From contig JAWMAR010000007.1 in the NCBI GenBank assembly GCA_036785375.1, forward strand, positions 11,222,001 to 11,286,000: a stretch of 64,000 nt of DNA, read 5' to 3'. Position 1 is the stretch's first letter, and each line of letters opens with the position of its first letter. Both the position numbers and the translations under genes were made by a program. This DNA comes from Leucoraja ocellata. Lineage: Eukaryota. The notes beneath the pieces are model-generated. The model did not search any database. It was not told the origin of the DNA and saw only the letters and a list, made by a program, of their open reading frames with translations. Positions 9,625-44,115 of this stretch are shown one piece after another.

Positions 9625-9686
9625 TTATTCTCCACTTGCATCCTTGGCCTGTTCTTTTGTATATACAACCGTTGCATAAATGCAGC
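9625..9686 (-). CDS. Siglec-15-like receptor, last coding exon (CIYATV motif, stop)
   Basis: Acceptor ttgtttatcttccag. Encodes GCIYATVVYTKEQAKDASGE*, with TAA at 9627-9625. Confidence 0.8.
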
Positions 9687-11019
9687 CTGGAAGATAAACA
9701 ATTTAATTTTTATGATTTTATGTTGTCATTGTAAGATTCTTCTATCTTGATTCAAACCATTGAGAACCATAGTTATACAACACGAAAACAGGCCCTTCGG
9801 CCCAACTTTCCAATGCCGACCATGATGCCCCATATACTCTAATCCCACATGCTTGTGTTTGGCCTATATCCCTCTTAACCTTTCCAAACCATGCACCTGT
9901 CTTTTAAATGTTGTCAGAGTATTTGCCTCAACTACCTCCTCTGGCAGCTCGTTCCATATACCATCACCCTCTGTGTGAAAAATTTGCCTATCAGGTTCCT
10001 ATTAAATCTTTCCCGTCGCATCTTAAACTCATCCTCTCGCATTTGATTGCCCTACTCTTGGAATAGATAGGTATGCAAACAACCAATCCATTCCCCTCGT
10101 GAGAGGAAAACGTCTAATCTCTCAAACTCAGAGCCTATCCAGAACTGGAACCCTCTCTGCAAATTCAGTCAGCCTTCCACCCCAGATCCAACATCCCCTC
10201 TCCATTATCATCTGATGGCCACTCTCCCCAGTCTTTCACTCAACTGCTGGTTAGACAGGTTAGATAAACTGATGATATGGTCATCCTGGTTGATTTGGGC
10301 TCCTTGTATTCTGGTCCTTCTTCAATTGTGCCTGGCTTTCCCTGGACCTGCCCTCTCAATATTAGAAAATTGCTTGAATTCAACCCAGTTTGAGCAAGGC
10401 CAGGCCCTCTCACCCATCAGAGAACCGGCTTGTCAGCGACTCTCTCCTCTATATTGCGGGTACTCTTAGTCTTCTTATTGCCAGAGGGAACTTGCCCCAT
10501 TTCGAAGCTCTTTGCTCCCACACTGACCCCTTCCCCCCATCATCCATCCAACCCCCTGAGACCAGGATCATCAGCTGTTTATAGAGTCAGAGTCATACAG
10601 TATGGAAACAGGCTCTTCGGCCCAACTTGCCCATGCCTTCCAAGATGCCCATCTACACTAAGCCCACTTGCCCACATTTGGCCCATATGTCTCTAAACCT
10701 TTCCTTTCCATGTACCTGACCAAATGTCTTTGAAATGTTGTCATAGTACCTTCCTCAACTACCCTCCTCTGGTAGCTCTGACCACCACCCTCAGTTTGAA
10801 AATGTTGCCCTTCTTTTTCCCATTATATCTTTTAGCTCTCACGTTAAACCCAAGTCATCTGGTTCTTGCGTTAAACCCATGTCCTCTGGTTGACAGCCAA
10901 CTACACAGAGCCAAGCTACTGTCTGAGGAATCTTGTCCACAGAATGTAAGGAATAGGGAGGGAAGTTGGCCATTCAGCCATTCAACATGATTTATGATGG
11001 ACATTGAAGCATTAGTCAA

Positions 11020-12730
11020 GCAAAAGGGGCATGTCAGATATAGGTAGCTGGGAATCAAGCAAACCTCTCAAGTATAAAGGGTGTAGGCTTACAATTTAGA
11101 GCGAAATAAAGAGGACAAAAAGAGGACATGAGATAGCTATGGCAGATAAGATAACGGAGAACTCAGAGAAATTCTCAAAGTATATTAAGAGCAAAAGGCT
11201 AAATAAAGAGAATAGGATCAACATGGTCATCCATGGGAGATGGGTGAGGTTTTAAATTAACATTTCTCATCTGTATTTATCGTGGAGAAGGTCATGGAAG
11301 TTAAGGAATTAAGAGTATTGAATTGCAATACATTGGAACATATCTACATTACAAAAGAGGTGCTGGCAGACTTAAGACATATTAGGGTAAATAAATGTCC
11401 AAGGCCTGATGAGATGTATCCTAGGATATTACGGGAAGCTAGGGACGAAATTTCAAGTGGTCTGGCAGAGGCATTTGCATCATCTTTAACATAAGTGTGG
11501 TGCTGGAAGATTGGAGGGTGGTAAATGTTGTGCCCCTATTTAAGAAGGGCTGCAAGTACAAGAGGGAACTACAGACCAGTGAGCCTGTAGTGGTGAGGGA
11601 ATTACTGGAGGGGATTTTGATGTTAATTCTGGCCAAATTGGAGATGTCAGGACACTAAAATTGTGTAAAGGCTTCTGGTCTGCTAGGCCATTTGGTCAAT
11701 TTAAATGTGCCTTCTGCAGAAATGGGACAAGCTGCAGAATGGTGCCAGCTTGTCTGGAGCCTAGATAAGAGTTGTAGGAAAAGAATGGGACTTCTGCAAA
11801 TTCTTACAATTAGGTGTAAATTGCATGAAACGGATTGGGTGAATGCAAACCAGATATATACATTGTTAATATTGTTCCAACGCTTTACTTTGCTAGATGT
11901 TGATTGGATTAAGTGTTGAGCCTTGTCTAGGTTTCTTGAATAACAAGGCACATGTTGCTATGTTTGCTTCCTTCCAGAAGCTCCGTTTGAATACAATGTA
12001 TTAGTTACTGTATTATTGGGTTAGGGAAATGTCTATCATGAACTGTGTTAATCGATATCTGTTATTGGACTGTAAAGAGACCACCCCCATATGATTCGTC
12101 CCTCAAGGTTCGGGCACCTATAAAAGGCCACTCCCACGAGGTCCTGAGTCGATCTTCTGGGAGAACGTTTGGGACTGTGCGACTGTTTGGAGTCTCTGCT
12201 TGCACAAGGCTAGGAGAGCTTGGCCAATCAGATACAAGGATCGAACCCACAGTGGTTAGGTATAGTAGTGAGGAACCGTTATTGTGTATTTCCAAAATAA
12301 AATTTAGATGCGTAAGGGCTTGACTCAGTATCTTATTGACTGAAACTAGACTGGGGGGAAGCGTAGAATGAGCTTTACAAGGATGTACAAGGATGTACCC
12401 GGATTTGGAACGGTAACGACTGATGAGGGATAGTTAGCATGGCTTTGTGTGTGGAATTTGTGTGTGACTCATGAATTTGACTGAGCTTTTGATGAGGCGA
12501 TGAGTCTATTGACGAGGGCAGAGCTGGTACACATTGCCTGCATGGACGTTAACAAGGCCTTTGCCAAGTTCTCACATGGCTTACTAGTCTGGAAGATTAA
12601 ATCACATGAGGTCTAGGGTGAATGAGCCAATTGGATATGAATTTGGCTTGGTGGAAGGTGGTGGTGATGGGTTGCTTTTCAGACTGGAGGCCTGTGACTA
12701 GTGGTGTATCACAGGGATCGGTGCTGGGCT
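11020..12730 (+). mobile_element. Decayed CR1 fragment, interrupted at about 11621-12379
   Basis: KCPRPDEMYPRILRE, YRPVSL and SGVSQGSVLG remnants are collinear on both sides of the interruption. Confidence 0.75.
11621..12379 (+). mobile_element. Candidate solo LTR inserted in CR1
   Basis: Unrelated insert starting TG and ending CA, with CTATAAAAG at about 12118 and AATAAA at about 12296. No clean TSD. Confidence 0.4.
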
Positions 12731-12822
12731 CACTCAGTATGAAATGGGTTTGATGTGTTCCCAAGGGGTGTCCTCGCAGATGTGTGTATTTTGCCGCTCA
12801 CGGTGTGTTCGGTGGTCCTTAC

Positions 12823-12900
12823 CAGTCTCCTCCTCTTTGCAGGGAGGTCTTTGAATGTGCACATTGCTGTACACAGTGTCATTCTGAGACTCCTGGGGAT
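12823..12900 (-). CDS. Siglec-15-like receptor, exon 10 (cytoplasmic ITSM-like TVYSNV)
   Basis: Acceptor ctgtgttcttttcag, donor G|GTAAGG, 78 nt. Encodes DPQESQNDTVYSNVHIQRPPCKEEET. Confidence 0.82.
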
Positions 12901-13619
12901 CTGAAAAGAACACAGATTGTTATTGCATTCCAGCATCTCTCCCCCACTGTATTCTATCACTCAAACCACCCACTCCCCTTTAAACGACATTGGGACAGGT
13001 ACTTGGTTTGGAAAGGTGTATAGGGATATGGGCCAAATGCAGGCAATTGGGACTAGTGTGGATGGGCATTTTGGTTGGCTTGAGCAAGTTGGACCAAAGA
13101 GCCTGCCTCTGTGCTCTATGACTCTATGAGTCCCCACCTTTGATAATCACTGTCTCTTGCCTGTTCCGATTGCCCCTCCTATAGTGGTCCATCTTTTGCC
13201 AAGACTGTTCTTCACCCCTCATTATGATACATTGCATGCCCCAAGAGAACCATCGCTGCTTCTGTACAGAACCGTACTGCAGAATAGACAGCATTGTACT
13301 TCCAGGTCTAACGCTTGGCTGCCCGTTGGTGGGAAGCGGAAAATAAACAACACCAGGATCTCCAGTAACTCTATGTCCTGGGTCTTTGTTACTACTTCCA
13401 CCGTGTCTGGCCTTTGCTGCACCTGCCCTGAATGTTGGATATGGAGAGCTCTGGATCACAGGCTCGCTGGGAAGCCCAGTGTATATTGTCAGTGCCAGTG
13501 GATGGTTCTAGTCAGTACATCAAGGGTTTGCATCCCAGCCTGTTGGGGGCACTATTTTACATGGGCCGTCCACACCACCACGTTGTTTCACAGCTCACCG
13601 TGTGCTTACTGTTCCTTAC

Positions 13620-13679
13620 CTATCTCCACTCCTACTCGAGAACGGCTTTGAATGTGAACAATGCTGTAAATGAGGGCAT
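13620..13679 (-). CDS. Siglec-15-like receptor, exon 9 (cytoplasmic ITIM LIYSIV; cryptic acceptor next to an L2 tail)
   Basis: Acceptor attattactctccag, donor G|GTAAGG, 60 nt. Encodes DALIYSIVHIQSRSRVGVEI and is homologous to exon 10. Confidence 0.65.
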
Positions 13680-13688
13680 CTGGAGAGT

Positions 13689-14243
13689 AATAATAATAAT
13701 AATAACTTTATTTATAAAGCACTTTAAACAACTGCAGTTGCCACAAAGTGCTGTACATGAGAACTCATGGACAAGAAGTTATTACTAACATTAAAAACCG
13801 TAAAACAAAGGACTATAAAACAGTAGAAATCAAAAGACATTAAAAGCACTAAAAACAGGAGCAATGTCTCAGCCAGTGTCGAACGCCAGAGAATAAAAAT
13901 GAGTTTTTAGGGTGGATTTGAAGATGGACAGTGAGGGGGCCTGTCTGATGTGCAACGGCAAGGTGTTCCAGAGTGCCGGAGCAGCAACAGAAAAGGCTCT
14001 ATCTCCTCTGAGCCTCCGCATAGACCTTGGTACCTCAAGGAGCAGCTGATCAGCTGACCTGAGGCACCGGGCAGGAGCGTGTGGGTGGAGCAGCTAAGAG
14101 AGGTAAGGCGGGGCGAGCCCATTCAATGATTTAAAAACAAATAAAATAATTTTTAAATGAACTCAAAAGTACACCGGGAGCCAATGAAGGGAGGCCAAAA
14201 TTGGCGTAATGTGCTCCCTCTTTCGAGTTCCGGTTAAGAGGCG
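13689..14243 (-). mobile_element. L2 LINE 3' fragment
   Basis: RLLTGTRKREHITPILASLHWLPV motif, an L2-type 3' end and an (ATT)n tail. Confidence 0.88.
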
Positions 14244-14699
14244 ATCTGGAAAGGACACAAAGTTACTGCACAACTTCATCGCCTTGCTATCTTAACCTCA
14301 CAATCCCAGCCCCTGAACTACTATCTCCCTTTTTGATGACCCTCGGACTGTCCTTGATCGGACTTTGTTGGCTTTACTTTCACTAAATGTTATTCCCTTA
14401 TCATGTATCGATACACTGTAAATGGCTCGATTGTAATCATGTATTGTCTATCTGCTGACTGGATGGCACACAACAAAAAGCTTTTCACTGTACCTCGGTA
14501 CACGTGACACCAAACTAAACTGTAACTGTCCAACACTCTCCCCCCCCATCCCTAGCCCTGACAGCCCAATCTCTCCCCTTTCCTATCACCCTACTCCCTT
14601 TTCTGCAGTTTTACTTCCCTGCAGGTGGAAAATAGAATATTGACAAGGCCCTGGAGGCAGGAATCTTGGGACTGGCATTGTTTTGCTGCTCACCATGTG

Positions 14700-17334: not shown

Positions 17335-17451
17335 CAACATTCCTGTCCAATTCTCCCGGAGTTGGGACTGCCTGGGTGGCTGCCCTGTTTCTTGTCTCTG
17401 TGTTTAAATCAACAACACTGTAAATAGGATCCCCTTCAGGCTCCTGTGAAC
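17335..17451 (-). CDS. Siglec-15-like receptor, exon 8 (cytoplasmic, PIYSVV motif)
   Basis: Acceptor ttttttgtgtctttggcag, donor G|GTGAGT, 117 nt. Encodes SQEPEGDPIYSVVDLNTETRNRAATQAVPTPGELDRNV. Confidence 0.82.
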
Positions 17452-18746: not shown

Positions 18747-18818
18747 CTGGCTCTGGTCCTTGTGGTTTCCGACCATTGGCCGCGCTGGCATCAACACAAC
18801 ACACACGCTGCTGTGCAC
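18747..18818 (-). CDS. Siglec-15-like receptor, exon 7 (juxtamembrane, CAQQRVCCVDASAANGRKPQGPEP)
   Basis: Acceptor cctgtgtctttgacag, donor G|GTAATA, 72 nt, phase 1/1, open frame. The acceptor resembles that of the next exon. Confidence 0.7.
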
Positions 18819-19815: not shown

Positions 19816-19923
19816 ATACTTTACTTTACAAAGGATTGAGATAAAATGAAGACAATGAAGACAGATGTAGAATCAAATAAGGAAGGAAGAAAACTGTGTA
19901 ATATAAAACCAAAGGGCAGAATG

Positions 19924-20531
19924 TGTGTCCCAGTGGGCCTCCCTGTGTCCCAGTGGGCCTCCCTGTGTCCCAGTGGGCCTCCCTGTGTCCCAGTGGGCCT
20001 CCCTCTGTCCCAGTGGGCCTCCCTGTGTCTCAGTGGGCCTCCTTGTGTCCCAGTGGGCCTCCCTGTGTCCCAGTGGGCCTCCCTGTGTCCCAGTGGGCCT
20101 CCTTGTGTCCCAGTGGGCCTCCCTGTGTCCCAGCGGGCCTCCCTGTGCCCCAGTGGGCCTCCCTGTGTCCCAGTGGGCCTCCTTGTGTCCCAGTGGGCCT
20201 CCTTGTGTCCCAGTGGGCCTCCCTGTGTCCCAGTGGGCCTCCTTGTGTCCCAGTGGGCCTCCCTGTGTCCCAGTGGGCCTCCCTGTGTCCCAGTGGGCCT
20301 CCCTGTGTCCCAGTGGCCTCCCTGTGTCCCAGTGGGCCTCCCTGTGTCCCAGTGGGCCTCCTTGTGTCCCAGTGGGCCTCCCTGTGTCCCAGTGGCCTTC
20401 CTGTATCCCAGTGGGCCTCCCTGTGTCCCAGTGGCCTTCCTGTATCCCAGTGGGCCTCCCTGTGTCCCAGTGGGCCTCCTTGTGTCCCAGTGGGCCTCCC
20501 TGTGTCCCAGTGGGCCTCCTTGTGTCCCAGT
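19924..20531. repeat. Minisatellite, 20-bp unit ccctgtgtcccagtgggcct, about 30 copies
   Basis: Directly visible tandem array with C/T variants and a few 19-bp units. Confidence 0.97.
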
Positions 20532-21185
20532 GTTGAACACTATTCAGTACCAATCCTACCTTACCCCGGGATGTTCTGTTGTATTAATCATGCCACATGC
20601 TTGCTCAGTAGACTAACAAAAAGTTTGGCATTTCTCCAACACACTAGCCAATTTCTACAAATGCACCATTGAAAGCAAGACAAAGTGCTGGAGTAATTTA
20701 GCAAGTCAGGCAGCATCCCTGGAGAACGTGGATAGGTGACGTATAGGGTCGGGACCCTTCTTCAGACTGATCGGGATACTGTCAGGATGCTTCACAGCTT
20801 GGAAACAGCTCCCCAAGACTAAGACATTTCAGAGAGTTGTGAATGTAGTTGAGTATATCACACAGACCACACTTCCCACTATTGACTTCATCTGCACTTC
20901 ACGCTGCCTTAGGAAAGCAGTGAACATAATCAAGGATATTTTTCACCTCGGTCATCCCCTCTTCTCCCCTCTCCCGTTGGGCAGAAGATACATTAGCTTA
21001 AAGACGCAATCCACCAGATTCAGGAACAGCTTCTTCCCCCACTTTTGCCAGACTACTGAACGGCCCTCCCACAAACTAAGGTGTAGTCCCGATCTTCCAA
21101 CTTACTTCAGTGCGACCCATGCATTTTTTCTCTTTTTATCTGAACTTTTTCTGGAGCTGTAACATTGTAATGAAGGAACTATGGA

Positions 21186-21432: not shown

Positions 21433-23020
21433 AAACACAATATTATGTACTCTGGTATTTTTCTCTTTACACTGCCTGTTGTACTTGTATATGGATTGAT
21501 TGTACTCATGTATGATATGATTAGATTTGACCAAATAACATACAAACAAAGATTTTCACTGTATCACAGTAGAAGTGACTATAATAATAAATTAATACAT
21601 GAATGCAAGCATTTGTTGCTGTTGTACAAATCTAAGGACCTAATCAAGAATCTATCAATCTACGCTATAAATTTTCCACTGACTAGACCTCCACTTTTGC
21701 CTGTGGCATTGAATTCCACTGATTCATCAGTCTCTGGCTAAAAAAAAAAAAATCTTCCTCATCTCCATTCTAAAGGTTCATCCTTTTATTCTGAGGCTGT
21801 GTTCTCTGGTTCTGGACTCACTGCTGGTAACATTCTCTCCATGCCCACATGTCCTTTTGATAGCATAGAGACCAAGGACCTATACATTTATACCCGAGTT
21901 CATATCTTCTTGCATTAAAGGCCATTACATTTGTTTTCCGAAATCCACACGTTTGATACATAAAGTGAGTTATCTGTGAACATTGGTATTCCCCAATCTG
22001 TAACCGCTGGAAGAGCATTGAAGTTTGACAGCTTTTTCTCACATTCCCATGTTGTTTCCCAACTTGGCTGGTCGTTATATTCTCTTCAAACCTTGAGCCA
22101 TCACATTCCCACTCAGTTTCACATCATCTGCAAACTGGTCCATGATTGAATCGGAACACTCAGAACCTTTTTCAAATGATACCCAAGCATTTGAAGAACA
22201 GCGAGGATCTAAGGACAGAATCACAGCCGGACCTTCCCACAAATTCATCGGAGGGCAAGGGCAATGAATACCTTATCTCAGGACTGTATTATTAAGAACA
22301 GGAATTCTGACCCTGTTATACCCGTCTATGGACAATGTCTGTCAGGGTAGCAATGGTGAGGGCAGACTTGACCCTTCAAGGGGTACAGCTCCAGTCCACT
22401 AGAACTGAAGATTTAACCTTGGCACACGATGTCTGTGCCGACCATAATGCCAAATTAAACTAATCGTATCTCTCTGCACATGGTTTTGATCTCTTTCCAT
22501 TCCATGTATATTTACATGTATAAATGCTCTTTAAACATTGCTAGCGTGTCAGCTTCCACACCTCCCCTGGTTGCACGTTCCAGGCACCAACCATTCTGAA
22601 CAAATGGCACTTCTTAAATCTCCGTTAAAAACATTCCTACTCTCATCTTAACCCATGCTCTTTAGTTTTTGACATCTAAACCCTGAGGAAAAAAGACTAA
22701 CTACTCTTTCTACATGTCTCAGAATTTGACATTATGTTCGCCCCTCAGCATCAGATGTTCCAGAGAAAAACAATCCAACCTCTCCTTATAGCTAAAATCT
22801 TCTAATCCAGGCATTATTCTGTAACCCTCTGCACCCTCTCCAAAGTGTCCAAATCCTTCCTGAAATGTGGTGACCAGAACTGGACAAAATACTCCAAATG
22901 TGGCCTAACCAGGGATGACTGGCCTCCTGTTCACATTTCCGGCCTATAATATTTGAAAAAGCCACCAGTCCCAAGAACACCCACAACAGCCCACAATGTA
23001 GTTGTTATTGGCAAACTCAC

Positions 23021-23389
23021 ATTTTTTCAAAGATATGAGAGCAAATACCATCAGGCCAATAGCCAATATGGATAATCCAATGTAGACGCCTGGGTGCAAC
23101 ACTCCCCCAACCTCGAATAGGCGGATCTCACGCGTGTCCATCTGGTGTTCATTCTCAGCCACACACGTGTATTTCCCTGGCAGCCTGAGGTGAAGCAGCT
23201 CTCCCACAGTCAGTAGTTTCTCTGGATCATGTGTGACTGTCATCTCACTAATGTTCACGGGCAGAGCACTGTTCCCTGGGCCGATCCATGTGATGTTTGC
23301 AGGGGGCTTCCCTTCAGCCCTGCACACGAGGGTGTGTTCTCCAGTTACATTGTCACTCACAACGAACAGCTCCAGGATGGTGGCTGGGA
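23021..23389 (-). CDS. Siglec-15-like receptor, exon 6 (C2-set domain plus transmembrane helix)
   Basis: LVCRAEGKPPANITWIGP...GKYTCVAEN resembles the Siglec-15 C2 domain. It is followed by the TM segment GVYIGLSILAIGLMVFALISL and KK. Acceptor ccttccttctccaag, donor T|GTGAGT, 369 nt. Confidence 0.9.
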
Positions 23390-24038: not shown

Positions 24039-24401
24039 CCACAACCTCCAGTTTAGTCTCATCCTGAGTCACCGTCTCCTGTGTGGAATTCCTGACCCAA
24101 ACGTAACAGAAATAGTCTCTGCTGTCGTCCAGTCTGAGTTCCTTCACTCTGATAGAGGCGTCTCCCTGGTCTAGTTTTCCCACCAGCTTATATCGACCTC
24201 CTCCCTTTACAGTGACAGTGGAGGGAGGGTTCACAGAGTGGGGGTGGGTGTGATTAAAGACTGTGGACTCTTCCCGTAGATTCCCCTTCATCCAGCGGAC
24301 AGTGATGGGGCTGGGATTCTTGTTCAAGGGGCTGAAGGAGCAGGGCAGTGTGGCTGAATCTCTTCTGTTCCCAATCACCATCGATGTGTTCTTCTTTCCA
24401 T
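24039..24401 (-). CDS. Siglec-15-like receptor, exon 5 (V4)
   Basis: ATLPC, ITVRW, GDASIRV, DSRDYFCYV. Acceptor cttttctctatacaag, donor G|GTAAGG, 363 nt. Confidence 0.88.
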
Positions 24402-24629
24402 CTTGTATAGAGAAAAGTTGTATTTAACAATCTATTCCACATGGTTTATAAAAATACATCATCCATGCCTGTGACATTGATTCCCCATCCCACTCCCACT
24501 CTGATCTGTCTGTCTCAGACCTCCTGCATTGTTCTAACGAGGCCCAATCTCAAGCAACCTCATCTTCTGTCTGGGCAGCATGAAGCTTTTGTGTTAACAT
24601 TTAATACAACAATTTCAATAACTTGCTTA

Positions 24630-25294
24630 AGGGCCTGTCCAACTTACGCGATTATTAGGCGACTACTGGCGACTAGGCGGTCACCACACGGTTGCCGGGT
24701 GTCACATGTAGGGTCGTGAGTCGTCTCCTCAAGTCGCCCAAAGATCCGTAGCGTTTTTCTGGTCGCCGCAGGATTTTGAAATGTTCAAATCTTTTTGGCG
24801 ACACTCAGCGATCTTGGGCTTGTCGTAGCTTGTCTTCTCCTGACGTAGGTGCTGTCGTAAGTTGTCGCCAGGATAGCATAGGTTGTTGCCAGGATGATGA
24901 AGGTTGTCGCTGGTGCTGACTTCGATGAATACATTTGGGGACTACCTACGTCAACTTGCGTCAACCGGCGACAGCTACCGGCGTCAAGAGAAGTCTTCAA
25001 TTGTCACCGACAGGGTGGTAACTTGTCGTAGCTTGTCGCGGGTGGAGGTAGGTTGACGAGTTATCGTAGGTTGTCACCTGTGTGGTCGTAGGGTTGTCTA
25101 GGTATGGTCGTAGGTGGACGTGCTAAGTCGTGACCATTGAGTCGCCGGTTGTCATGGCTTAACGTCGACTAGGTGGTTGGTTGTTGTAGACATTGTCGTA
25201 GGGGGGGTCCAGTCACCAGTTTTTCGGCAACCTGCTACGACCATGACAGTCACCGGCAGTTGCCTAAAAAAATCACCTAAGTGGGACAAGCCCT
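24630..25294. mobile_element. PIF/Harbinger-like MITE, 665 bp
   Basis: TIRs agggcctgtccaactt...aagtgggacaagccct with a TTA TSD on both sides. The interior is CpG-rich with gtcgtag/gtcgcc repeats. Confidence 0.8.
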
Positions 25295-26692
25295 TTACTG
25301 TTAAGTATAAGAACTGGCCAGAACTGCCTCAAAAGTCAATATTACCAGACACAAACCACCATAGCTAGAGGCTGATGACAATACCACTGGAGATGCCACA
25401 AGTCTCCCGTCAACACCAACATTGGAGATGAGACAGTGGCGTTCACCTCTGTTCAAACATGAGAAAGTGAAGCCAATCGTAAGAGTGCAGTCCACATGTG
25501 GCAGCTCAAATATCAAACCCACACATGGGCTGTAGTGTTGCTTATTGAAAATGCAAGAGTATCATGAGGAAGACAGATGAACGTAGAACTGTCGAAAGAT
25601 ATTACAAATATTAATCTAATACAGATATAGGCAGAGAAATGGCAGATGGAGTTTGATCCGAACACGTGTGAAGTGTTGTCTTTGGGAGGTTGAATGCAAG
25701 TGGAAAATATACAAGGGCAAGACCCTTAATACCACTGATGTACAGACAAATATTGGGATCCAATTCCATAACTCCCTGAAAATGGCAACACATTAAAAAA
25801 GTGTACAGTATTTTTGCTTTCATTGGTCAAGGGACTGAATACAAGATGTGTAGGAAGGAACTGCAGATGTTGGTTAAAACTGAAGATGGACACAAAAAGC
25901 TGGAGTAACTCAGCGGGACAGGCAGCATCTCTGAAGAGAAAGGATGGGTCACGTTACAGGTCAAGAAGAAGATACTTGACCCGAAACATCATCCATTCCT
26001 TCTCTCCAGAGATGCTACCTGTCCCGGTGAGTTACTCCAGCTTTTAGTGTCTATCTACTGAATACAAGAGTCAGGAAGTCATGTTGTAGCTCTATACAAC
26101 TTTAGTTATGACACTGGGATTATTGCATTCAGTTTTATGTGCAGTTTTTACCCATTACAGGATGAGGAGACTTTGGAAAGGGTTCAGAAGAGGTTTACCA
26201 GAATGCTGCCTGGATTAGAGGGTAATAGTTATAAGTAAAGGTCGGACATACTTGAACTGTTTCTCTGGACTGTTGAAAGTTTATAAAAATATGAAAGACA
26301 TGGATAGGAGAGAGAGTCAGAACCTTTTGCCTACGGCGGAAATGTCAACGAATAGACGGTATTGTCACAAGGACAGATGGGAAAAGATGAAAGGAGATAT
26401 GTGGGGAAAGTTATTGTTTACACAGAGGGTGGTGGGTGCCAGGAAAATACTGCTGGGGGTGGAGGTGGAGGCAGCTACGATAGTGGAGTTTTAGAGACTT
26501 TTTGAAATGCAGGTAATGGAAGAAATGCATCACCTGCAGGTAGACGAGATTAACGTAGCATCATGTTCGGTACAGACATTGCGGGCCAAAGGGCCTGTTC
26601 CTGTGCTGGTCTACACTGTCAGTGGGAGCTCATTCCTCTTAAGGTTGTTCAATATGATGTTATCGTTTACAGCATAACATACGTTTCCTTAC

Positions 26693-27055
26693 CCACAACC
26701 TGCAGTTTCATCTCATCCTGAGTCACAGTCGTCAACGTTGAATTCCTGACATAAACGTGACAGGAGTAATCACTGGCGTCATCCAGTTTGAGTCCCTTCA
26801 CTCTGATGGAGGCGTCTCCCTGCTCCAGATTTCCCACCATCTGATATCGATTTTCTATATTGACATTTTCAGGAATGCGATTTGCTGCTGGGCGGGGAGA
26901 AGTGTCACGAAAGACAACAGACCATTTTGGTGGATTCCCCTTCATCCAGCTGATGGTGATGGAGCTGGGATTCCTGTTCGAGGGACTGAAGGAGCAGGGC
27001 AGTGTGGCAGTCGCACCCTTCCTCCCAATCACCATGGATGCTCTGTCATTATCAC
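26693..27055 (-). CDS. Siglec-15-like receptor, exon 4 (V3)
   Basis: ATLPC, ITISW, GDASIRV, DASDYSCHV. Acceptor tcttctctctgcaag, donor G|GTAAGG, 363 nt. Confidence 0.88.
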
Positions 27056-27444
27056 CTTGCAGAGAGAAGAGTTTTAAAGTGTGAATATGATTTAGTAATT
27101 GAATACAATAACCACAGTCTTCATCAATAGTTCATCCATACTTGTGACTTGGATTCTCCATCCCATTCCACTCTGATCCACCTGTTCCTGAACTGCACTA
27201 TTCTAATAAGGGCCAATCTCAAGTAGAGACATCTCAGTTTCAGTCTGGCCAGGATGGAGCCTTGACCTTGAAGACCAGGAACCGGAGAGGAGGATGGAGG
27301 GTGACTAAAGGCGCGGTTAACTGAATTAGGTGGGGTGGGGGGGGTGGGGGGGGGGGGGGGGGTGGGGGGGGTGGGGGGGTTGGGTCTTAGGTTCTGCACC
27401 CGAAGCACTTCTCATTACCTCTGACATCTGCACTAATCAGGAAT

Positions 27445-28340
27445 CAACTTATCTCTGCCTTAAATATATCCACTGACTTTGCCTCCACAGCCATCTGTGG
27501 CAATGAATTCCATAGATTCACCACCCTCCTACCAAAGAAATTCATCCTCATCTCCTTCCTAAAAGAACGTCCTTTAATTCTGAGGCTAAAACCTCGCGTC
27601 TTCAACTCTCCCACTAGTGGAAGCATCCTCTCCACATCCAAGCCTTTCACTGTTCTGTCTGTTTCAATGTCGTCCTCCCTCATTCTTCTAAACTGCAGCA
27701 AACATAGGCCCAGTGCCGTCAAATATTCATCTGATGTTATCCTACTAATTCCTGGGATCATTCTTGTGAACCTCCTCTGGACCCTCTCCAGAGCCAGCAC
27801 ATCCTTCCTCAGATATGGTGCCTAAAATTGCTCACAATATTCCAAATGTGGCCTGACCAGCGCCTGAAAGATTCTCAGCATTACATCCCTACTTTTGCAT
27901 ATAAACCCTCTCGAAATAAATGCTAGCATTGCGTTTGCTTTCTTTACAACTGATTCAACTTGCAGATTGACTTTTTGTGAATCCTGCACCAGCATTCTCA
28001 AGTCACCTTGCACCTCCGATTTCTGGATTCTCTCCCCATTTAGAAAGTAACCAATGCCTTTAATCCTATTACCAAAATACATGACTCCACACTTTTCCAC
28101 ACCTTTCCATCTGCCACTTCTCTGCCCACTCTCCCAACCTATCCAAGTTCTTCTGCAGAGACCCTGCTTTCTCTGCACTACCTGCCCATCCACCTATTTT
28201 TGTATACTCTGCAAACTTGGCCACAAAGCCTTCAATCCCCTCATCCAAATCATTAATATACAACGTGAAGAGCAGTGGCCCCAGCACCGAGCCCTGCGGA
28301 ACTCTGCTAGTAACTGGGAGCCAACCAGAAAATGCCTGGT
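27445..28340 (-). mobile_element. CR1 LINE RT/C-terminal fragment
   Basis: [26 protein letters not shown] and LERVQRRFTRMIPG, with frameshifts. Confidence 0.88.
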
Positions 28341-28807
28341 TAACGGAATCAGGAGGGGTGGAGGAGTTTTTAACTTCCGCTCCCTAATCTCATCTGCGGG
28401 AGGAGCCCCCCCCCCACCGCACAGCACCCCTGGGGAAGAAGGGCTGAATAGGGCTGTGCAGGGTGAGGGTCAACATTCCAGGACAACTGGAATGGAGGCG
28501 GCGGCTGCAATGGGGCCTCTGTGGCCACTGCATCGAGGACTGTAAAATGGTGCAAAATGGCAACTGTTGCCCAGACTCAGTGGGTTCTTCTGTACATGAT
28601 GTACTAACCGGGGGGATTGTGCTTATTTATGTACGGTGATATTCTTACTGATCTGTATGCAAAATAGTATTTCACTGTACTTGCTACATGTGATAATAAA
28701 GAAACCATTGAACCGAAAATAGACACAAAATGCTGGAGTAATTCAGCGGGCTGGCAGCATCTCTGGATAGAATGAATCGGTGACGTTTCGGGTCGTGATT
28801 CTTCTTC

Positions 28808-29016
28808 AGGAGAACTGAGTCAGTATCGCAGATGCTGTAGAACTCGCCAGTTCTGATACAAACAGCGAGCAAGTCACCAGAAATTGTTCTATTCACGGTT
28901 GACCCATTGAACTATTGAGTCAACATTGAATGCAACAATTTCTGGTAACTTTCTCGCTGTTTGTATCAGAAGTTCTGCAGCAGGTTATCCATCTGTAATA
29001 CTGACTCAGTTCTCCT
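28808..29016. repeat. About 210-bp imperfect palindrome inside a fold-back repeat
   Basis: The arm aggagaactgagtcagtat...ttctgatacaaacagcgag...ccagaaattgtt is mirrored by its reverse complement. Confidence 0.85.
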
Positions 29017-29949
29017 CCCTCCACTGACACTGCCTGATCTGCAGCGTGTTTCTTGCAGCTGACGTACGTTTTGCAGCTCTGTTTTTATCTTTGTTTGTGT
29101 TCTCTGTCTCCAGTTTCCTTCCTTAATTTATCAACCAGATAAAGTTGCAATAATTGTTCAGAGAATAACTGATTAATATTCCATTTTGCTTATCTTCAGT
29201 ACAACTGGTTAGTTCTGATAAAAGAGAGAAAAAGTATCATCCAAAATTCTTGAATTCAATGGAGTCTGCAATGATGCAGAGAGCCCTGTTCTTCAAATTG
29301 CATTAGACGGGTTATAAGGAAGTCACAAAAAATAGTCAGAGGGGGAATTGCATGGATGATTAAGATTACAAGCACCAGAAAGCTCAGGATTAACCATGTA
29401 GAATGAATAAAAGGTTTTCCCTCGTTCCCCCGCCCATCAACTGCATTTATTCCTTGTGAAAGCAGCCAACATAATGAAGGATCACTCACACCCGAGTTAC
29501 TCTCTCTTCTCCCCTCCCCCATTACCGGAACCAGAGGCTGACAACAATGTCACTGGAGGTCCCATGATTCTCCCATCAACACCAGCAATGGAGATTAGAC
29601 ATGATGTTTATCTATGTTTAACCACTAGAAAGTGAAGCCAATCACAAGAAAGTAGACTCAACAAATGGCAGCTGAAATGATCAACCTGTCCATTCCCTCC
29701 CGCACACACACGTATCTCCAGATACATTATCACCATCGCTCCAAGATGGTGGCTGAAGCCTAGAGAGGGATAAAAATCACTGTTATTCATTGGTGCAGGG
29801 GGAGAACCAGGGAGGGGTGAAGATTTGAAAGAGACCCAGCGGGAGAATGGAGTGAAATATTCAGAGAGGAAACAGAACGAAGCTCATTCTTCTCACAGTT
29901 GTTCAATGTGATTTTATCATTTACTCCTCAACATTGACTGTTTCCTTAC

Positions 29950-30318
29950 CCAAAACCTGTAGTCCCACTTCATCCTGAGTCACCTGAATTTTTTTCTTCA
30001 GAGGGGAATTCCAGGTCCAAACATGACAGAAATAGTTGTTGGTGTCATTCAATGTGAGTCCCCTCACTCTGATGGAGGCGTCTCCATTGTCTACGTTTCC
30101 CACCAGCTCATATCGACCTCCTGTATTTACATTGTCAGTGCCTGGACCACTTGTGGCGTAGGAGCGGGTATGATTAAAGACAACGGACTCTTCCCATGGA
30201 GTCCCCTTCATCCAGAGGATAGTGATCACCCTGCTATTTGCTCTCGAGTGTTTGAAGTTGCAGTTCAGTGTGGCACCACCTCCTCTCTTCCCGATCACCA
30301 TAGATGCGCTGACATCAC
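29950..30318 (-). CDS. Siglec-15-like receptor, exon 3 (V2, V-set domain without the essential Arg)
   Basis: Open frame with ATLNC, ITILW, GDASIRV, DTNNYFCHV. Acceptor ctttctctatccgag, donor G|GTAAGG, 369 nt. Confidence 0.85.
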
Positions 30319-30420
30319 CTCGGATAGAGAAAGATTTAAAATATGGACATTATTCATTGGTCGGATGCATTACCCACATTTATTTTTATCAATACTTTAC
30401 CTGTGTCTGTGACCATGTTG

Positions 30421-38122: not shown

Positions 38123-39307
38123 CTTCCAACCTCATCTATTGCATTTGGTGTCCCCAATATGATGAATACTTGTGTTCAGTCTGCCAAGGCCTGCTGGAGC
38201 TCCTGATTACCAAGCTTTTTAACTCCTCGTTCTGTTCTCACACCAACCTGATTGTCACTGGCCTTGTGTATTATCAGTGTGAGAACACACGCACATTGGA
38301 AGAACAGCACCTCATGGTCAGCTTGAGTAGCTTATAACCCAACCGTATGAACACTGAACTCTCAAAGTTCGTAAATCCCCCTCCCCCCCCCTCCCCCCCC
38401 ACACCAGCCCACTGTGCACACATTGCTCCATTATCCCTGTCACACTGCTCCTTTCCTCTCCCGTATTCATCTCCCATCCTCGAATCCCATAGTTCCTTCT
38501 ATCACGTCTTTCACCTGCCCATCTCCCCTGGCCCATTCCATCCATTTGCCTCCACCTTTACATTTTGTTTCCTTGTCTGACACCTTTTACCACTTTTCAC
38601 CACTCGCCATTATCACTGTCTCCACCCATCTGATAAGCATCTCCCCCGTGCCCCCCTCCCCCACCTCCATCCACCTTTCATTGGGCAAGCTTTGCCCCGT
38701 TCCCATCTTTCTCCCTACTACTCCATTAGTTTGAAGGGAACCGACCCGGATAATTGCCTGTCCATTTCCTCCACCAATGCTGCTTGACCCACTGTGTCTT
38801 CAGCACTTTGTGTTTTGCTCATGGTTCCAACATCTGCAGTTTCTAGTGCCTCAATGGGATGATTTGTCTGGATGGCACTCGGAAAAATATCACTGTATCT
38901 CAGTGCAATAGACAATAATAAACCAATACCAATATCTGAAACTTAACTGGAGGAGATATAATATGTGACTATAACAGCAGGCCAGATGTGGCAATGACAT
39001 CACCCCATTCCACAGTGACTGGACATCATGGTCAAGGCAGAAATGAGGAGTATGAGTGAAGATGGTTATCAAAACTACAGCAGGATCGTGATCAGCGGGG
39101 CAAGTGGGTTGAGGGTTGGTTAATAGAGTTAAAATTCAGTTTAGTGCAACGTGATGTATTTTAGACAGTCAAACCAGGGCATGATCTCCCAGTGATGTAG
39201 CCAACAAGTCAGCAGCTTGAACAATTGCCAGCCATGCCAGTAACATCGGAATCACAGGAAGCAGGAAGGAAGACAAATTGTTTGTTTGCAGCACAATCAT
39301 TCCTCAC

Positions 39308-39691
39308 CTGGTATTTTGATAGGCCCATGTGCGCATTCATACATTGCCTTTGTTTGCTCTGTGAGCTCAACACGACAGTAGAGGGTCTTGATTGTATCCG
39401 TCGTTCTCAGCTGATTAATGATTATGGAAGCATCGTTCTTCCGAGGGTCCCCCATTCGTCGGTAGTGAGCTCCTACATTATACACAATATCATTTTTACA
39501 CGTGCCGCTTGATAGATAATTTTTGTATTCGAAAAGGGTCTTCTTGGGCTTCTCCTCTTTCCAGATGATGTTGATGTTGCCTTTGTATTCATGGTGAGGG
39601 TGAGTGAACTTGCAGTACAGAACCACGAGCTTCCCCTCCCTCCCCATCACCTTGTCCGGTGTCTCTATGGACCAACCACTGGTATTGCAGC
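39308..39691 (-). CDS. Siglec-15-like receptor, exon 2 (V1, sialic-acid-binding-type V-set domain)
   Basis: Acceptor tgtgtcttcacag, donor G|GTGAGG, 384 nt, phase 1/1. Motifs WSIETP, LYCKFTHPHHEYKG, GDPRKNDASI, YCRVE and YECAHG match the Siglec-15 V domain pattern (CTFTHPH, GNPRRNDLSL, FCRVE, YESRHG). Confidence 0.9.
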
Positions 39692-40269
39692 CTGTGAAGA
39701 CACAGAGATGTAACGTTAAGACTGAACTGAGGGCCACAGTCACTGTCGGAGGCTGCGCGCACCCTGGGTCCCTGCCCTTGTGGAAGACAGTTGAACTGTG
39801 ATGCTGCTGTGCTGTTTGTCACCGTCACCATGTGGTGAGCTGTGAGAAATGGGGAGGTGGGACTGTGACACTAACAGTGGTTCCCCTCCTCCGGGCTGTG
39901 CTGGCTCTTCACTAGAGCCACATCTCTCACAGCTATAAGCTGCTGTCCGGGAGAGACCTTGCATTTACATCACTTCCCTCACAGACAGGGGGTGGTCCAC
40001 AGAGCTTCACAGGTTTGAAGTGTTGGCGGTGAAGTAGCGTTGGGAATGCCACAGGCAAGTAGTGCACAGCAAGATCCCACAAAGGAAGTACCTGACCACT
40101 AATCGAGGATGTACACAGCTGGCACAGTGGAGCAGCTAGTGGAGCTGCTAACTCACAACTCTAGGGACTCAGAGTTTAATCCTGACCTCAGATGCTGTGT
40201 ACAGTTTGCACTTTCCATCTATAACTGCATGGGTTTCTCTTTCTTAGTTTGTTTCCCACATCTCAAAGA

Positions 40270-42510
40270 TAGAAACATAGAGACATAGAAAATAGGTGCA
40301 GGAGGAGGCCATTTGGCCCTTCGAGCCAGCACCGCCATTCATTGTGATCATGGCTGATCGTCCCCAATCAATAACCCGTGCCAGCCTTCTCCCCATATCC
40401 CTTGACTCCACTAGCCCCTGGAGCTCTATCTAACTCTCTCTTAAATCCATCCAGTAATTTGGCCTCCACTGCCCTCTGTGGCAGGGAATTCCACAAATTC
40501 ACAACTCTTTGGATGAAAAGATTTTTTCTCACCTCAGACCTTAAATGGCCTCCCCTTTATTCTAAGACTGTGGCCCCTGGTTCTGGACTCGCCCAACATT
40601 GTGAACAATTTTCCTGCATCTAGCTTGTTCAGTCCTTTTATAATTTTATATGTTTCTATAAGATCCCCCTCATCCTTCTAAACTCCAGCCTAGTCTTTTC
40701 AATCTATCCTCACATGACAGTCCCGCCATCCCAGGGGTCAATCTCATGAACCTATGCTGCACTGCCTCAATCACAAGAACGTCCTTCCTCAAATTAGGAG
40801 ACCAAAACTGTACACAGTACTGCAGATGTGGTCTTACCAGGGCCCTATACAACTGCAGAAGAACCTATTTACTCCGATACTGAAATCCTCTTGTTATGAA
40901 GCTTAACATTCCATTAGCTTTCTTCACTACCTGCTGCACCTGTAAGCCAACTTTCAGTGACTGGTGTACAAGGCCACCCAGGTCTCGCTGCACCTCCCCC
41001 TTACATAACCTAACCCCATTGAGATAATAATCTACCCTCTTGTTTTTGCCGCCAAAGTGGATAACCTCACATTTATCTATATTACACTGCATCTGCCACT
41101 CATCTGCCCACTCACTCAACCTGTCCAGGTCACCCTGCAACCTCCTAACATCCTCTTCACAATTCACACTGCCCCCCAGCTTTGTGTCATCCGCAAACTT
41201 GCTAGTGTAGCTCCTAATTCCCTCTTCCAAATCATTAATATATATGGTAAATAGTTGCGGCCCCAACACCAAGCTTTGCGGCAATCCACTCGCCACTGCC
41301 TGCCATTCTGAAAAGGACCCGTTCACTCCTACTCTTTGCTTCCTGTTTGCCAATCAATTTTCTATTCATGTCAAAACCCTACCCCCAATACCATGTGCTC
41401 TAATTTTAGTCACCAGTCTCCCATGTGGCACCTTATCAAAGGCTATCTAAAAGTCTAGACACACTGCATCCACTGGCTCCCCTTCATTCATTTTACTTGT
41501 CACATCCTCATAAAATTCCAGATGATTAGTCAAGCATGATTCCCCTTTCATAAATCCATGTTGACTTGGACTAATCCTTTTACTGCTATCCAATTGCCCC
41601 ATTATTACCTCTTTAATAATTGACTCCAGCATCTTTCTCACCACCGAAGTCAGGCTAACTGGTCTGCAATTCCCCGTTTTCTCTCTCGCTCCTTTCTTGA
41701 AAAATGGGATAACATTAGCAATCCTCCAATCCACAGGAACTGATCCTGAATCTATTGAACATTGGAAAATGATCACCAATGCGTCCACTAATTTTAGAGC
41801 CACCTCCCTGAGGAATCCTGGGATGCAGACCATCAGGCCCAGGGGATTTATCATCCTTCAGTCCCATTAGCCTACCCAATACTATTTCTAACCTAATAAA
41901 ATGTTCTTTCAGTTCCTTTACCCCCTTAGATCCTCTGTCCTTCAGTACATCTGGGAGATTGTTTGTGTCTTCCTTAGTGAAGACAGATCCGAAGTACCAA
42001 CTTTTCTGCCATTTCCTTGTCCCCATTATAATTTTACCCGTGTCTGCATTCAATGGACCCACATTTGACTTTGCTACTCTTTTTCCCATAACATATCTAA
42101 AGAAGCTTTTACTGTCCTTCCTTATATTCCTGGCCAGCTGCCCCTCATACTTCATCTTTTCAGCCCATATTGCCCGTTTTGTTTCCATCTGTTGTCGTAT
42201 GAAAGTTTCCCAATCCTCTGGCTTCCGACTACGCTTTGCTGTGTTATACATCTTTTCGTTTAGTTTTATTCTATCCCTAACTTCTCTTCTCACCCACGGT
42301 TGCCTCCTACTTAGAATCTTTCTTCCTTTTTGGAATGAAATGATCCTGCATCTTCCGATTATGCCCAGAAATTCCTGCCATTCCTGTTACATCGTCATTT
42401 CTGTTAGGATCCCTTTCCAGTCTACCTTGGCCTGCTCCTCTCTCATGCCTTCATAGTCCCCTTTGTTCAACTGCTTCACTGACACTTTAACCTTCTCCTT
42501 ATCAAATTGA
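40270..42510 (-). mobile_element. CR1 LINE, about 2.2 kb, 5'-truncated and frameshifted
   Basis: KSPGPDGLHP, NCRPVSLTSVV, QHGFMKG, KFADDTKLGG and a CR1 tail. Confidence 0.92.
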
Positions 42511-44066
42511 TGCGCATCGTTAATTCACAGACTACTCTAAGTTGCCCTCAGTGTTTTTCGGTGAGTGGTAGAAACTGGGGCTGGGGAGCCATGGATTGAT
42601 TTTTGAGCTGAATTACTGCTCAATTCTTGTGATATTCTAGTTGCTGTGCTAATCCACGAGAATTCTGGTTACTGCTCCAATGCTCAGGACATTTTAATTA
42701 TTGCACTAACTTTCGTGACTTTCTCGTTTCTGCTCTAAATTCTAGGGGCATTGGACCAGTTCTGCAGCAGGAAAGACCTCTCCAAGATCAATGGGTTGCA
42801 CCTCAGCCACACTGGGACAGTGTCGTAGTAGGGAGATTTATTGGTGCACGAAGAAGAGTTTGAGCCAAACAGACAAAGTAATGGATCAGTATCTATTACT
42901 AGTGTGTGGCAAGAGAAAAGAGAAATAAGGTGCACCAAGATTGGGAGTGGCAGATAGTACGAAAATAGTAAATATGTGAGTGAGCCTGGTTATTGATAGG
43001 TAGAAATATCTATATGGAAAAATGATGCAGAGTTGGGGCAGGACCAGACATTTAATGGTTCTGGCTACAAGGTGTTGATAATGGAGAGGGAAGGGACATT
43101 TTAGATGGGCCGGTAATACTGATTGAGGAAAATTAGTATTGGTTTATTATTTTCATGTATACTGAGATAGGCAAAAAATTATTTTGTGTGTTATCCGGCT
43201 AAATCGTACCATTCATGATTACATCACTTAGTGCATTAGAGAAAGCAAATAGAGTAAAGAATATAGCATTGCACCTACAGAGGAAGTGTCGTTTAATAAA
43301 AATGTTTGTGGCCACAACAAGGTATATTGGAAGATTGGGGATTCATCCTTCACATGAGATGTTATTTTGAGAAAGGTATTATCCCAGGTGCAGGTGTTCA
43401 CTGTACCTCAATACATGTGACAATAATAAACCAAAACCAATTTGATTAGGATCAGAATCAACAATGAGCGCAAAGACATTCAGAGCAACACAGGAAACCA
43501 TTTGGCTGTTCAAGCCTGGTCAACAGTCAATATGATTATGGCTCTTAATTGCTAATCAATACAGAATTGAACTTTGTCCCCATTCCCCTTGATTTCTTTA
43601 GCCTGGGAATATATTCAGCTCCTTGCTGAAGACAAGAGGTGGCTTGGCTTGAACTACTTTCAATTTGATAATTCTATAGGTGCATTACTCTCAGTGAAGA
43701 TATTTCTCATCATCTTCACTTTTAAACTATGCCAAGGACACAACGCCCTTCACCCCCTCTCAAGGGCTAATATCTTCATCCAGAAGTGTGGGGTCGACAA
43801 CTAAACACAATCTCCCCAGCTGCTCTGACTCCAGCCTTATAATCTCAAACCGATCATTTACTGTATTGTAAAATGTTTGTATTAAAGGTCTTCACACACA
43901 TACATATTCCCTTTCTGGAAGACTGCCTGTCACCTTAAGTACAGCATCAAAAGACTGATCCTGCTCTGTTTCCACGGACACACATGTCTATCTCATACAG
44001 TTAATCATTTCACTCACAGTGAAACAGCCAGAAAAGCAACTCTGCTCCTTATTAAAGGATACTTAC

Positions 44067-44115
44067 GATTAGCGGTGACAGGCAGTGCAAAGGCACAAAG
44101 CAAAATGAACAGCAT
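44067..44115 (-). CDS. Siglec-15-like receptor, exon 1 (signal peptide MLFILLCAFALPVTAN)
   Basis: ATG at 44115 with A at -3, a 16-codon hydrophobic leader, then a phase-1 donor C|GTAAGT. Joins in frame to the V1 exon. Confidence 0.8.

Follow-up and report, generated by a model that had tools for sequence, protein, structure and literature searches.

A four-V-domain, tyrosine-motif gene of Leucoraja ocellata as a probable inhibitory-type member of a cartilaginous-fish Siglec-15 family

A stretch of 64,000 nt from the skate Leucoraja ocellata (GenBank assembly GCA_036785375.1, contig JAWMAR010000007.1, positions 11,222,001 to 11,286,000), referred to here as the window, carries on its minus strand an eleven-exon gene related to Siglec-15. 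All coordinates below are positions within the window. The predicted product is a 761-aa type I membrane protein in which a Siglec-15-like V-set domain (V1) is followed by three further V domains (V2 to V4), a C2 domain, a transmembrane (TM) segment, and a cytoplasmic tail bearing tyrosine motifs. The gene is probably an intact member of a tandemly expanded skate family and belongs, on the same balance of evidence, to the tyrosine-motif (inhibitory-type) branch of the cartilaginous-fish Siglec-15 family. In the literature, Siglec-15 itself is an activating receptor of V-C2 layout that couples to DAP12 and is conserved between fish and mammals (PMC7226832).

The gene runs from an ATG at 44115 to a stop codon ending at 9625. 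Exon borders were read directly and then verified by script, which reproduced the eleven exons, the AG/GT borders, the phase, the product of about 761 aa, and the end coordinates given in an initial annotation made from the sequence. The exon lengths total 2,286 nt, or 761 codons plus the stop, and all 20 splice dinucleotides are intact, with AG at ten of ten acceptors and GT at ten of ten donors (GTAAGT, GTGAGG, GTAAGG five times, GTGAGT twice, and GTAATA). Every junction is in phase 1, no exon contains an internal stop, and the immunoglobulin (Ig)-like open frames of the gene span lie on the minus strand only. Exon 1 (44115..44067, 49 nt) supplies the start codon and signal peptide in 16 codons plus one base, is preceded by an in-frame stop, and ends at a GTAAGT donor. 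An out-of-frame ATG on the same strand at 44127, 12 nt upstream of the start codon, opens a short upstream open reading frame that overlaps the start. The Amblyraja protein P0114 matches exon 1 at 92% identity over 52 aa, extending into the 5′ flank, and reads through the region upstream of the start, with no stop where the window has TGA.

Searches and structure predictions were run on single exons or on database proteins. When family proteins were compared with the whole window by tblastn, the matches were colinear, lay on one strand, and fell only on the eleven exons; all of them lie within 9628-44232, and no Siglec-family exon was found by this search outside 9.6-44.3k. Since predicted proteins of other skates match each exon colinearly, the eleven-exon gene is confirmed as more than a chance arrangement of open frames.

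The nearest proteins come from Amblyraja, Leucoraja, and Rhinoraja, and the pattern of similarity is mosaic. Three of them, P0113 (Leucoraja erinacea LOC129695366 isoform X3, 694 aa), P0003 (Amblyraja radiata LOC116971578), and P0118 (Rhinoraja longicauda LOC144611565), are automatic predictions named "uncharacterized protein", to which per-exon identity spans 66-100%. P0113 matches exons 2 to 9 at E-values of 3e-71 to 9e-9, with identities of 66% in V1, 87% in V2, 86% in V3, 94% in V4, and 96% over 124 aa of C2 and TM segment, followed in the tail by 85% for exon 7 (26 aa), 95% for exon 8 (39 aa), and 100% for exon 9 (24 aa); this last match extends beyond the donor, as P0113 ends after exon 9 by reading on. 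The corresponding values for P0003 are 75% in V1, 87% in each of V2, V3, and V4, and 85% in C2. P0118 matches exon 1 and exons 4 to 11, so that V3, V4, and the C2-TM exon are covered as well, with exons 1 and 7 to 11 matched at E-values of 1e-8 to 8e-4; its identities are 85% for exon 1 (27 aa), 70% for exon 7 (27 aa), 87% for exon 8 (39 aa), 67% for exon 9, 79% for a longer form of exon 10 (33 aa), and 75% for exon 11 (20 aa). V1 is the fastest-changing domain, at 66-75% identity to the nearest relatives versus 86-97% for the other domains. In a word-indexed search with P0003, 27 proteins reached E<=1e-10 among 8,000 candidates scored; the product of the window gene was not among these 27 matches, and none of the three predictions is identical to it.

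The possibility that V1 and the V2-C2 part belong to separate genes, one of the refuting conditions named in the initial annotation, was examined by tblastn with six, then four, family proteins and is rejected as the main reading, as no second leader, TM, or tail exon lies between V1 and V2. The joint between V1 and V2 rests on the shared phase, on the absence of another leader exon, and on five predictions from three skate genera (P0003, P0113, P0114, P0005, and P0117) that likewise join V1 to a V2-type domain. A separate stretch at 22175-22246 on the minus strand agrees in 24 of 24 residues with the odd C-terminus of the Amblyraja protein P0003. No AG precedes it, and an alternative 3′ exon at 22246-22175 is rejected in the window; the likely explanation is either a repeat common to both or an exon wrongly modelled in P0003.

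V1 is encoded by exon 2 (39691..39308, 384 nt), sits directly after the signal peptide, and carries a Cys-Arg (C-R) pair on strand F. In an exhaustive comparison of this exon with 1.84 billion representative proteins, 103 matches reached E<=1e-3 and 10 of these E<=1e-30; the top matches are predicted proteins of cartilaginous fishes and a lungfish. Among 20 matches with names checked, ten are called Siglec-15, Siglec-15-like, or Siglec-12, and the other ten are "uncharacterized" or unnamed proteins from chondrichthyans, lungfish, and lamprey. Of ten mid-ranked matches checked, seven bear the name Siglec-15 or Siglec-15-like and come from two turtles, a gull, a fox, a golden mole, a frog, and a conger eel; the remaining three are a Logan protein without a name and uncharacterized proteins from Narcine and a lamprey. 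The best solved relative of V1 is Siglec-15 (PDB 7zoz; E-value 7e-16, 61.5 bits over 119 residues), and CD33 follows as the next family (7e-5, with CD33 chains at most 25.9 bits). A profile built from 14 chondrichthyan V1-V2-C2-TM proteins also places 7zoz first (1.7e-29) through two separate stretches, in which the profile V1 aligns to the Siglec-15 V domain (76.6 bits) and the C2-stalk-TM part to chain positions 142-260 (31.4 bits), including the alignment of the TM Lys of activating forms. In a tree of 67 V domains over 131 columns, V1 falls in a chondrichthyan V1 clade with support 99/95. Sequence comparison thus supports the claim of the initial annotation that V1 is Siglec-15-like, with Siglec-15 the closest of the families compared.

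The sialic-acid pocket of human Siglec-15 is formed by R143, directly after C142, by W44, Y87, and Y154, and by the backbone of V150, R153, and E155, with the Arg making a salt bridge to sialic acid (PMC10264397). Chain numbers in 7zoz equal UniProt numbers minus 19, and C64, C142, W44, Y87, and Y154 land on the right letters under this numbering. The C-R pair of V1 aligns to C142-R143, and V1 retains the equivalents of W44, R143, Y154, and E155.

The internal V domains are encoded by exon 3 (V2; 30318..29950, 369 nt), exon 4 (V3; 27055..26693, 363 nt), and exon 5 (V4; 24401..24039, 363 nt), the first, second, and third domains of a V2 type, respectively. They score 53.2 (V2), 51.8 (V3), and 54.1 bits (V4) against the Pfam V-set model and are about 51% identical to one another versus 22-23% to V1, with which they share core motifs. 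The position of the V1 Arg is occupied by His in V2, His in V3, and Tyr in V4; both Ig cysteines are retained in all four V domains. At the DNA level, V2 to V4 show about 73% mean column identity, including roughly 100 bp of upstream and 60 bp of downstream flank. In the V-domain tree, V2, V3, and V4 each cluster with the same-numbered domain of P0003 and P0113 (support 100/99, 100/100, and 100/99), and V4 is 97% identical over 116 columns to domain 4 of P0113. From this one-to-one grouping it follows that the triplication is older than the split of these skate genera, and V2 to V4 are, by sequence, old tandem duplicates of a second V type.

By sequence and modeled structure, the V2-type domain is a possible, not a clear, duplicate of a Siglec-15 V domain. 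V2-type domains of all chondrichthyans form one clade (95/88), V1-type domains another (99/95), and the V domains of bony-vertebrate Siglec-15 a third (91/83), the tree of 131 columns showing a three-way split among them. Against the PDB, the V2 exon finds 7zoz as its best single-stretch match (1.3e-7, 34.8 bits), with TIM-3 at 26.4 bits. Its predicted structure is a generic IgV fold (predicted local distance difference test 86.7), and comparison by Foldseek gives 7zoz a TM-score of 0.80/0.78 at 27% identity, the best among the matches listed.

Exon 6 (23389..23021, 369 nt) encodes the C2 domain, a stalk, and an uncharged TM segment ending in KK. Its Ig domain exceeds the Pfam cut-offs for I-set (27.4 bits), C2-set_2 (25.5 bits), and Ig_2 (28.4 bits). 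The initial annotation had found Siglec-15 signature motifs in C2, a claim that holds through the family profile but fails for the exon alone, where 7zoz is matched at 3.8e-5 and 26.8 bits (chain 165-261), does not surpass LRIG1 or MuSK at 27.4 bits, and is outranked by multi-Ig proteins. C2 alone is therefore rejected as a Siglec-15 signature.

The hydrophobic TM stretch in exon 6 lacks K, R, D, and E, and the cytoplasmic tail that follows is modular, each tyrosine motif lying on its own phase-1 exon. Exon 7 (18818..18747, 72 nt; borders AG and GTAATA) encodes a juxtamembrane Cys-rich cassette, exon 8 (17451..17335, 117 nt) a cassette with PIYSVV, exon 9 (13679..13620, 60 nt) one with LIYSIV, and exon 10 (12900..12823, 78 nt) one with TVYSNV; exon 11 (9686..9625, 62 nt) is the last coding exon and contains CIYATV and then VVYTKE before the TAA at 9627-9625. 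The pattern of the immunoreceptor tyrosine-based switch motif (ITSM) is TxYxx[V/I], and TVYSNV is ITSM-like. The immunoreceptor tyrosine-based inhibitory motif (ITIM) has the signature [I/V/L/S]xYxx[L/V] (PMC7226832), by which LIYSIV is canonical. Taken from sequence, the inhibitory-type TM segment and tail of the initial annotation are upheld, with a canonical ITIM, an ITSM-like motif, and a pair of YxxV motifs. Conservation of these tail cassettes extends to Rhinoraja, Leucoraja, Mobula, Narcine, and Heptranchias, and the terminal xIYA[TA]V motif, which is CIYATV in exon 11, recurs in the Mobula, Narcine, and Heptranchias relatives. Compared with its Rhinoraja counterpart, exon 9 lacks six residues at the 5′ end; it agrees fully with the Leucoraja model. 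Besides the donor at 12823, exon 10 offers another at 12802 that is likewise in phase (GTAAGG and GTGAGC). As the distal donor is in phase, adds seven residues, and is used in the Rhinoraja relative P0118, a 768-residue form of the product is possible.

Beyond the window, domain typing found one or more V2-type domains after a V1-type domain in every chondrichthyan member. The V1-V-V-V-C2 order is also present in the RefSeq predictions P0113 (Leucoraja) and P0003 (Amblyraja), so the architecture is not peculiar to the window gene. Nor does the initial annotation's picture of a lengthened V-C2 receptor fit the family, all chondrichthyan members examined having at least V1-V2-C2. Skates, with V1-V2-V2-V2, added only two more V2-type copies; the chimaera Callorhinchus, with V1-V1-V1-V2 (P0107) and V1-V1-V2, expanded V1 instead, as did the lungfish Protopterus (P0001 and P0006), in which one protein contains seven V1-type domains and the "Siglec-15" contains two. 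Heptranchias has V1-V2-V2. Skates, chimaera, and lungfish have each lengthened the receptor by V, not C2, domains, which breaks the rule of one V-set domain per Siglec. Lampreys (P0017 and P0152) have three to five related V domains carrying the C-R pair. Two further predictions, P0004 from Amblyraja, in which the end of one family gene is fused to the 5′ untranslated region, leader, and V1 of the next, and P0002 from Mobula birostris, in which two whole family genes are fused, imply head-to-tail tandem arrays.

The TM segment and tail were read in 35 proteins, and two receptor types emerge among chondrichthyans, both present from chimaera to skates. The Lys-TM type (11 models) has the layout V1-V2-C2, a near-invariant Lys in the TM segment, and a tail of 4-19 aa. 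The Tyr-tail type (8 models from 6 genes) has an uncharged TM segment and motifs of the form [SILVT]xYxx[ILV]; none of the five tail tyrosines of the fused Mobula birostris model fits this pattern. A Lys-TM form with a related ectodomain in other skates (P0120 and P0119) bears out the expectation of a paired-type partner. The Tyr-tail type is chondrichthyan-wide, chimaera included, and the description of the gene as a lineage-specific cartilaginous-fish paralogue proves too narrow in view of the "siglec15-like" protein P0055 of Conger conger, which is alike. P0055 lacks the TM Lys and has two ITIM-like tail motifs, and the teleost siglec15-like gene may be an inhibitory-type paralogue too. In the V-domain tree, the Callorhinchus V1 domains of both types cluster by species (100/100), and batoid Lys-TM V1 domains form a clade of their own (100/98) apart from skate Tyr-tail V1 domains (97/86).

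The two types also differ at the Arg position, which was surveyed in 39 V1-type domains. In the Lys-TM forms of nine of ten elasmobranch species (P0009, P0119-P0121, P0124, P0127, P0128, P0132, and P0134), the residue at the R143 position is Leu, Mustelus being the exception, and the same nine forms also lack the aromatic residue at the Y154 position. The chimaera Lys-TM form retains both. Among Tyr-tail genes with an uncharged TM segment, the window gene included, Arg and aromatic are kept in six of eight, the two exceptions being Mobula birostris with Gln and Callorhinchus P0133 with Cys; partial skate and ray models lacking a TM segment have Arg in six of six. These counts are of sequences, not events, and a single loss in an elasmobranch ancestor could account for most of these. 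Judged from their residues, the Lys-TM elasmobranch lectins annotated as "sialic acid-binding" may not bind sialic acid.

The receptor would work as follows. V1 would bind sialylated glycans, with V2 to V4 acting as a stalk that keeps V1 off the membrane, the role that C2 domains play in other Siglecs. Upon ligand engagement, Src-family kinases would phosphorylate LIYSIV and TVYSNV, and the phosphorylated motifs would recruit phosphatases of the SHP-1/SHP-2 type, so that activation is dampened. The receptor would then form the inhibitory counterpart to the short-tailed, Lys-TM "Siglec-15" found in these fishes, for which coupling to DAP12 is presumed.

Several observations weigh against reading the gene as an intact, expressed, sialic-acid-binding inhibitory receptor. 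The Pfam V-set score of V1 is 25.9 bits against a cut-off of 26, 0.1 under it. At the Y87 equivalent V1 has K, and it does not conserve the C95-C104 disulfide found in a loop of human Siglec-15. Cloned zebrafish Siglec-15 showed weak binding to tested glycans (PMC7226832), and lectin activity in fish relatives is unproven for that reason. CAR, Nav beta-4, CRIg, and JAML reach Foldseek E-values equal to or better than that of 7zoz for V2. In the tail, PIYSVV and CIYATV are of the YxxV form but have P and C, respectively, at position -2, outside the ITIM signature. None of the sequencing runs holding the stretch is on record as RNA, and the type of the run X1 is only guessed as RNA. On the supporting side, when reads were compared with 24331-30330 at 90% likeness, contig X1 record 3 (1,145 letters) lay on 26693-27053 and then directly on 29948-30320, which is V3 spliced to V2 at the predicted borders within a two-letter ambiguity. 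Beyond the V2 acceptor, a further 411 letters of the contig no longer follow the genome; V1 is 384 nt long. X1 covers the V2 and V3 bins at a depth of about 22-36, whereas its depth over the unique intron bins at 28931-29730 is 0. However, the contig differs from the window at 22 of 361 and 29 of 373 letters (92-94% alike), and so comes from a close homologue, either a paralogue or another species, not from the window copy. X1 record 2 continues unspliced through the V3 donor, and the V1-V2 joint falls outside the comparison, its intron being 9 kb long against the 6 kb covered. RNA support for the window gene is thus indirect, at the level of a homologue.

Two alternative explanations concern the gene and its product. 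The exons may be real and the main product shorter, with V2 to V4 serving as alternative cassettes and the four-V protein as a minor isoform. All internal exons are symmetric in phase 1, and because each V exon begins and ends in phase 1, the frame survives the skipping of any one. RefSeq moreover gives several isoforms for relatives, and the Heptranchias models X2 (V1-V2-V2) and X3 (V1-V2) apparently derive from one gene. This explanation is nevertheless unlikely given that X1 record 3 holds V2 and V3 in one contig together with upstream sequence, that all four V domains occur in P0113 and P0003, and that each of V2 to V4 has remained intact from a time before the divergence of the skate genera. 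It is quite improbable that the gene is an unexpressed or decaying copy in a fast-turning-over cluster, intact only because it is young. The missing RNA record, an exon 9 shorter than its Rhinoraja counterpart, and introns full of transposon remnants along with a 609-bp minisatellite would fit decay, but the copy has kept an open frame of 2,286 nt over eleven exons, every splice dinucleotide, and the Ig cysteine pairs of its V domains, and the short exon 9 is identical to one in a Leucoraja RefSeq model. An intact gene encoding the full V1-V-V-V-C2 receptor remains the preferred reading.

The ligand is a separate matter. It has been considered that signalling is inhibitory while V1 binds a protein, in the manner of the B7 family or other IgV domains, rather than sialic acid. 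After 7zoz, CD276 is the solved structure that best fits the family profile, matched through V2 and C2 (85.5 bits for the 4-Ig form and 44.5 bits for the 2-Ig form), and two members are named "CD276 antigen homolog" or "CD276 antigen-like" by NCBI. The loss of the Y87 equivalent, the poor glycan binding of zebrafish Siglec-15, and the rapid change of V1 point in the same direction. Yet Arg, Trp, and the G-strand aromatic are kept in the window gene and in six of eight Tyr-tail genes, and this triad is lost together in nine of ten elasmobranch Lys-TM forms. Joint keeping and joint loss suggest that, where the triad survives, its residues are constrained together, and we regard a protein ligand for V1 as doubtful. 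A more tentative proposal, possible though we lean against it, is that the elasmobranch pair has swapped roles. The ITIM-bearing multi-V branch would be the real "self" sialic-acid sensor and the DAP12-type receptor would have lost Arg and aromatic; no firmer is the corollary of an inhibitory Siglec system independent of mammalian CD33-related Siglecs, with the DAP12-type receptor freed for sensing other ligands or pathogen decoys.

The window protein combines features of several known receptors. Human Siglec-15 has a V-C2 ectodomain, couples to DAP12/DAP10 through a TM Lys, and lacks an ITIM (PMC7226832). The window protein resembles it in the B-F disulfide directly followed by the essential Arg and in the C2 domain and stalk that come after, aligning to chain 165-261, but differs in three extra IgV domains, an uncharged TM segment, and a long Tyr-motif tail. 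With a five-domain ectodomain instead of V-C2, no TM Lys, and an ITIM, it departs in three defining features from a Siglec-15 orthologue. It shares with the Siglec family the N-terminal V-set domain and the aligned strand-F Arg and departs from the rule of a V-set domain followed only by C2-set domains, as three V-set domains lie between V1 and the single C2. In CD33-related Siglecs, the tail typically has a membrane-proximal ITIM and a distal ITIM-like or ITSM motif. The window protein is like them in its Arg-bearing distal V domain, spacer, uncharged TM segment, and ITIM-type tail, and unlike them in its weak sequence relation (7e-5 versus 7e-16), by which it falls outside the CD33 clade, and in spacers that are V-type, not C2-type. 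Fish genomes are stated to lack CD33-related Siglecs (PMC7226832). CD276/B7-H3 has an IgV-IgC unit that aligns to the V2-type and C2 part of the profile; however, V2 of the window alone has no CD276 match at E<=0.01, V1 has none, and CD276 lacks the lectin Arg context.

The closest likeness is to the "uncharacterized" Tyr-tail loci of chondrichthyans, with which the window gene shares the layout of V1, V2-type domains, C2, uncharged TM segment, and tail cassettes. P0113 agrees with the window gene in both the V1-V-V-V-C2 order and the tail cassettes, P0003 in the order, and P0118 in the cassettes; P0003 differs in lacking a signal peptide, TM segment, and tail, and P0118 in having only one V2-type domain. 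The Lys-TM proteins P0120 of Leucoraja and P0119 of Rhinoraja are built of the same V1-type, V2-type, and C2 blocks, with P0120 73% identical to the window in V4 and 79% in C2, and differ in the single V2-type domain, the near-invariant TM Lys, and the short tail of 4-9 aa. A full-text literature search, which did not extend to supplements or subscription journals, found no paper on a multi-V or ITIM-bearing cartilaginous-fish relative of Siglec-15, and in the excerpts it returned "siglec15l" appears only as a zebrafish marker gene. The fish-Siglec survey (PMC7226832) contains 0 occurrences of cartilaginous fish; in the whale-shark genome paper, Siglecs are named a single time, within a list, and supplementary file 9 of PMC8455134, on gene families including Siglecs, could bear on the negative outcome of the literature search. 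Since RefSeq already contains this architecture as unnamed predictions, finding the gene is in itself no discovery.

The introns and flank hold other features. A minisatellite in intron 6 (19924-20532) consists of 30.6 copies of a 20-bp unit with 94% matches and produces long spurious open reading frames (ORFs) in all six frames. Reverse-transcriptase remnants lie in intron 1 at 40868-41857 on the minus strand (Pfam RVT_1, 4.5e-11 and 2.9e-5); reverse-transcriptase-like ORFs at 27.4-28.4k in intron 3 and long ORFs at 33.4-37.6k in intron 2 have no Pfam match at 1e-3. X1 and DNA runs pile up heavily on 25.7-26.1k, 27.3-27.9k, and 28.5-28.9k, a pattern that repeats would produce. At 46995-47194 the window has 200 N.

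The immediate practical value of these results is modest, namely that a set of uncharacterised automatic annotations deserves a proper name. For the family, they suggest that the oldest lineage of jawed vertebrates has a second, Tyr-motif branch of Siglec-15 with several V-type domains. If both binding and inhibition hold true, inhibitory sensing of sialic acid as "self" would have been present at the base of the jawed vertebrates or would have arisen twice. The elasmobranch receptors would then be natural pairs in which the activating partner has lost its ligand pocket, and the structural definition of a Siglec would be widened.

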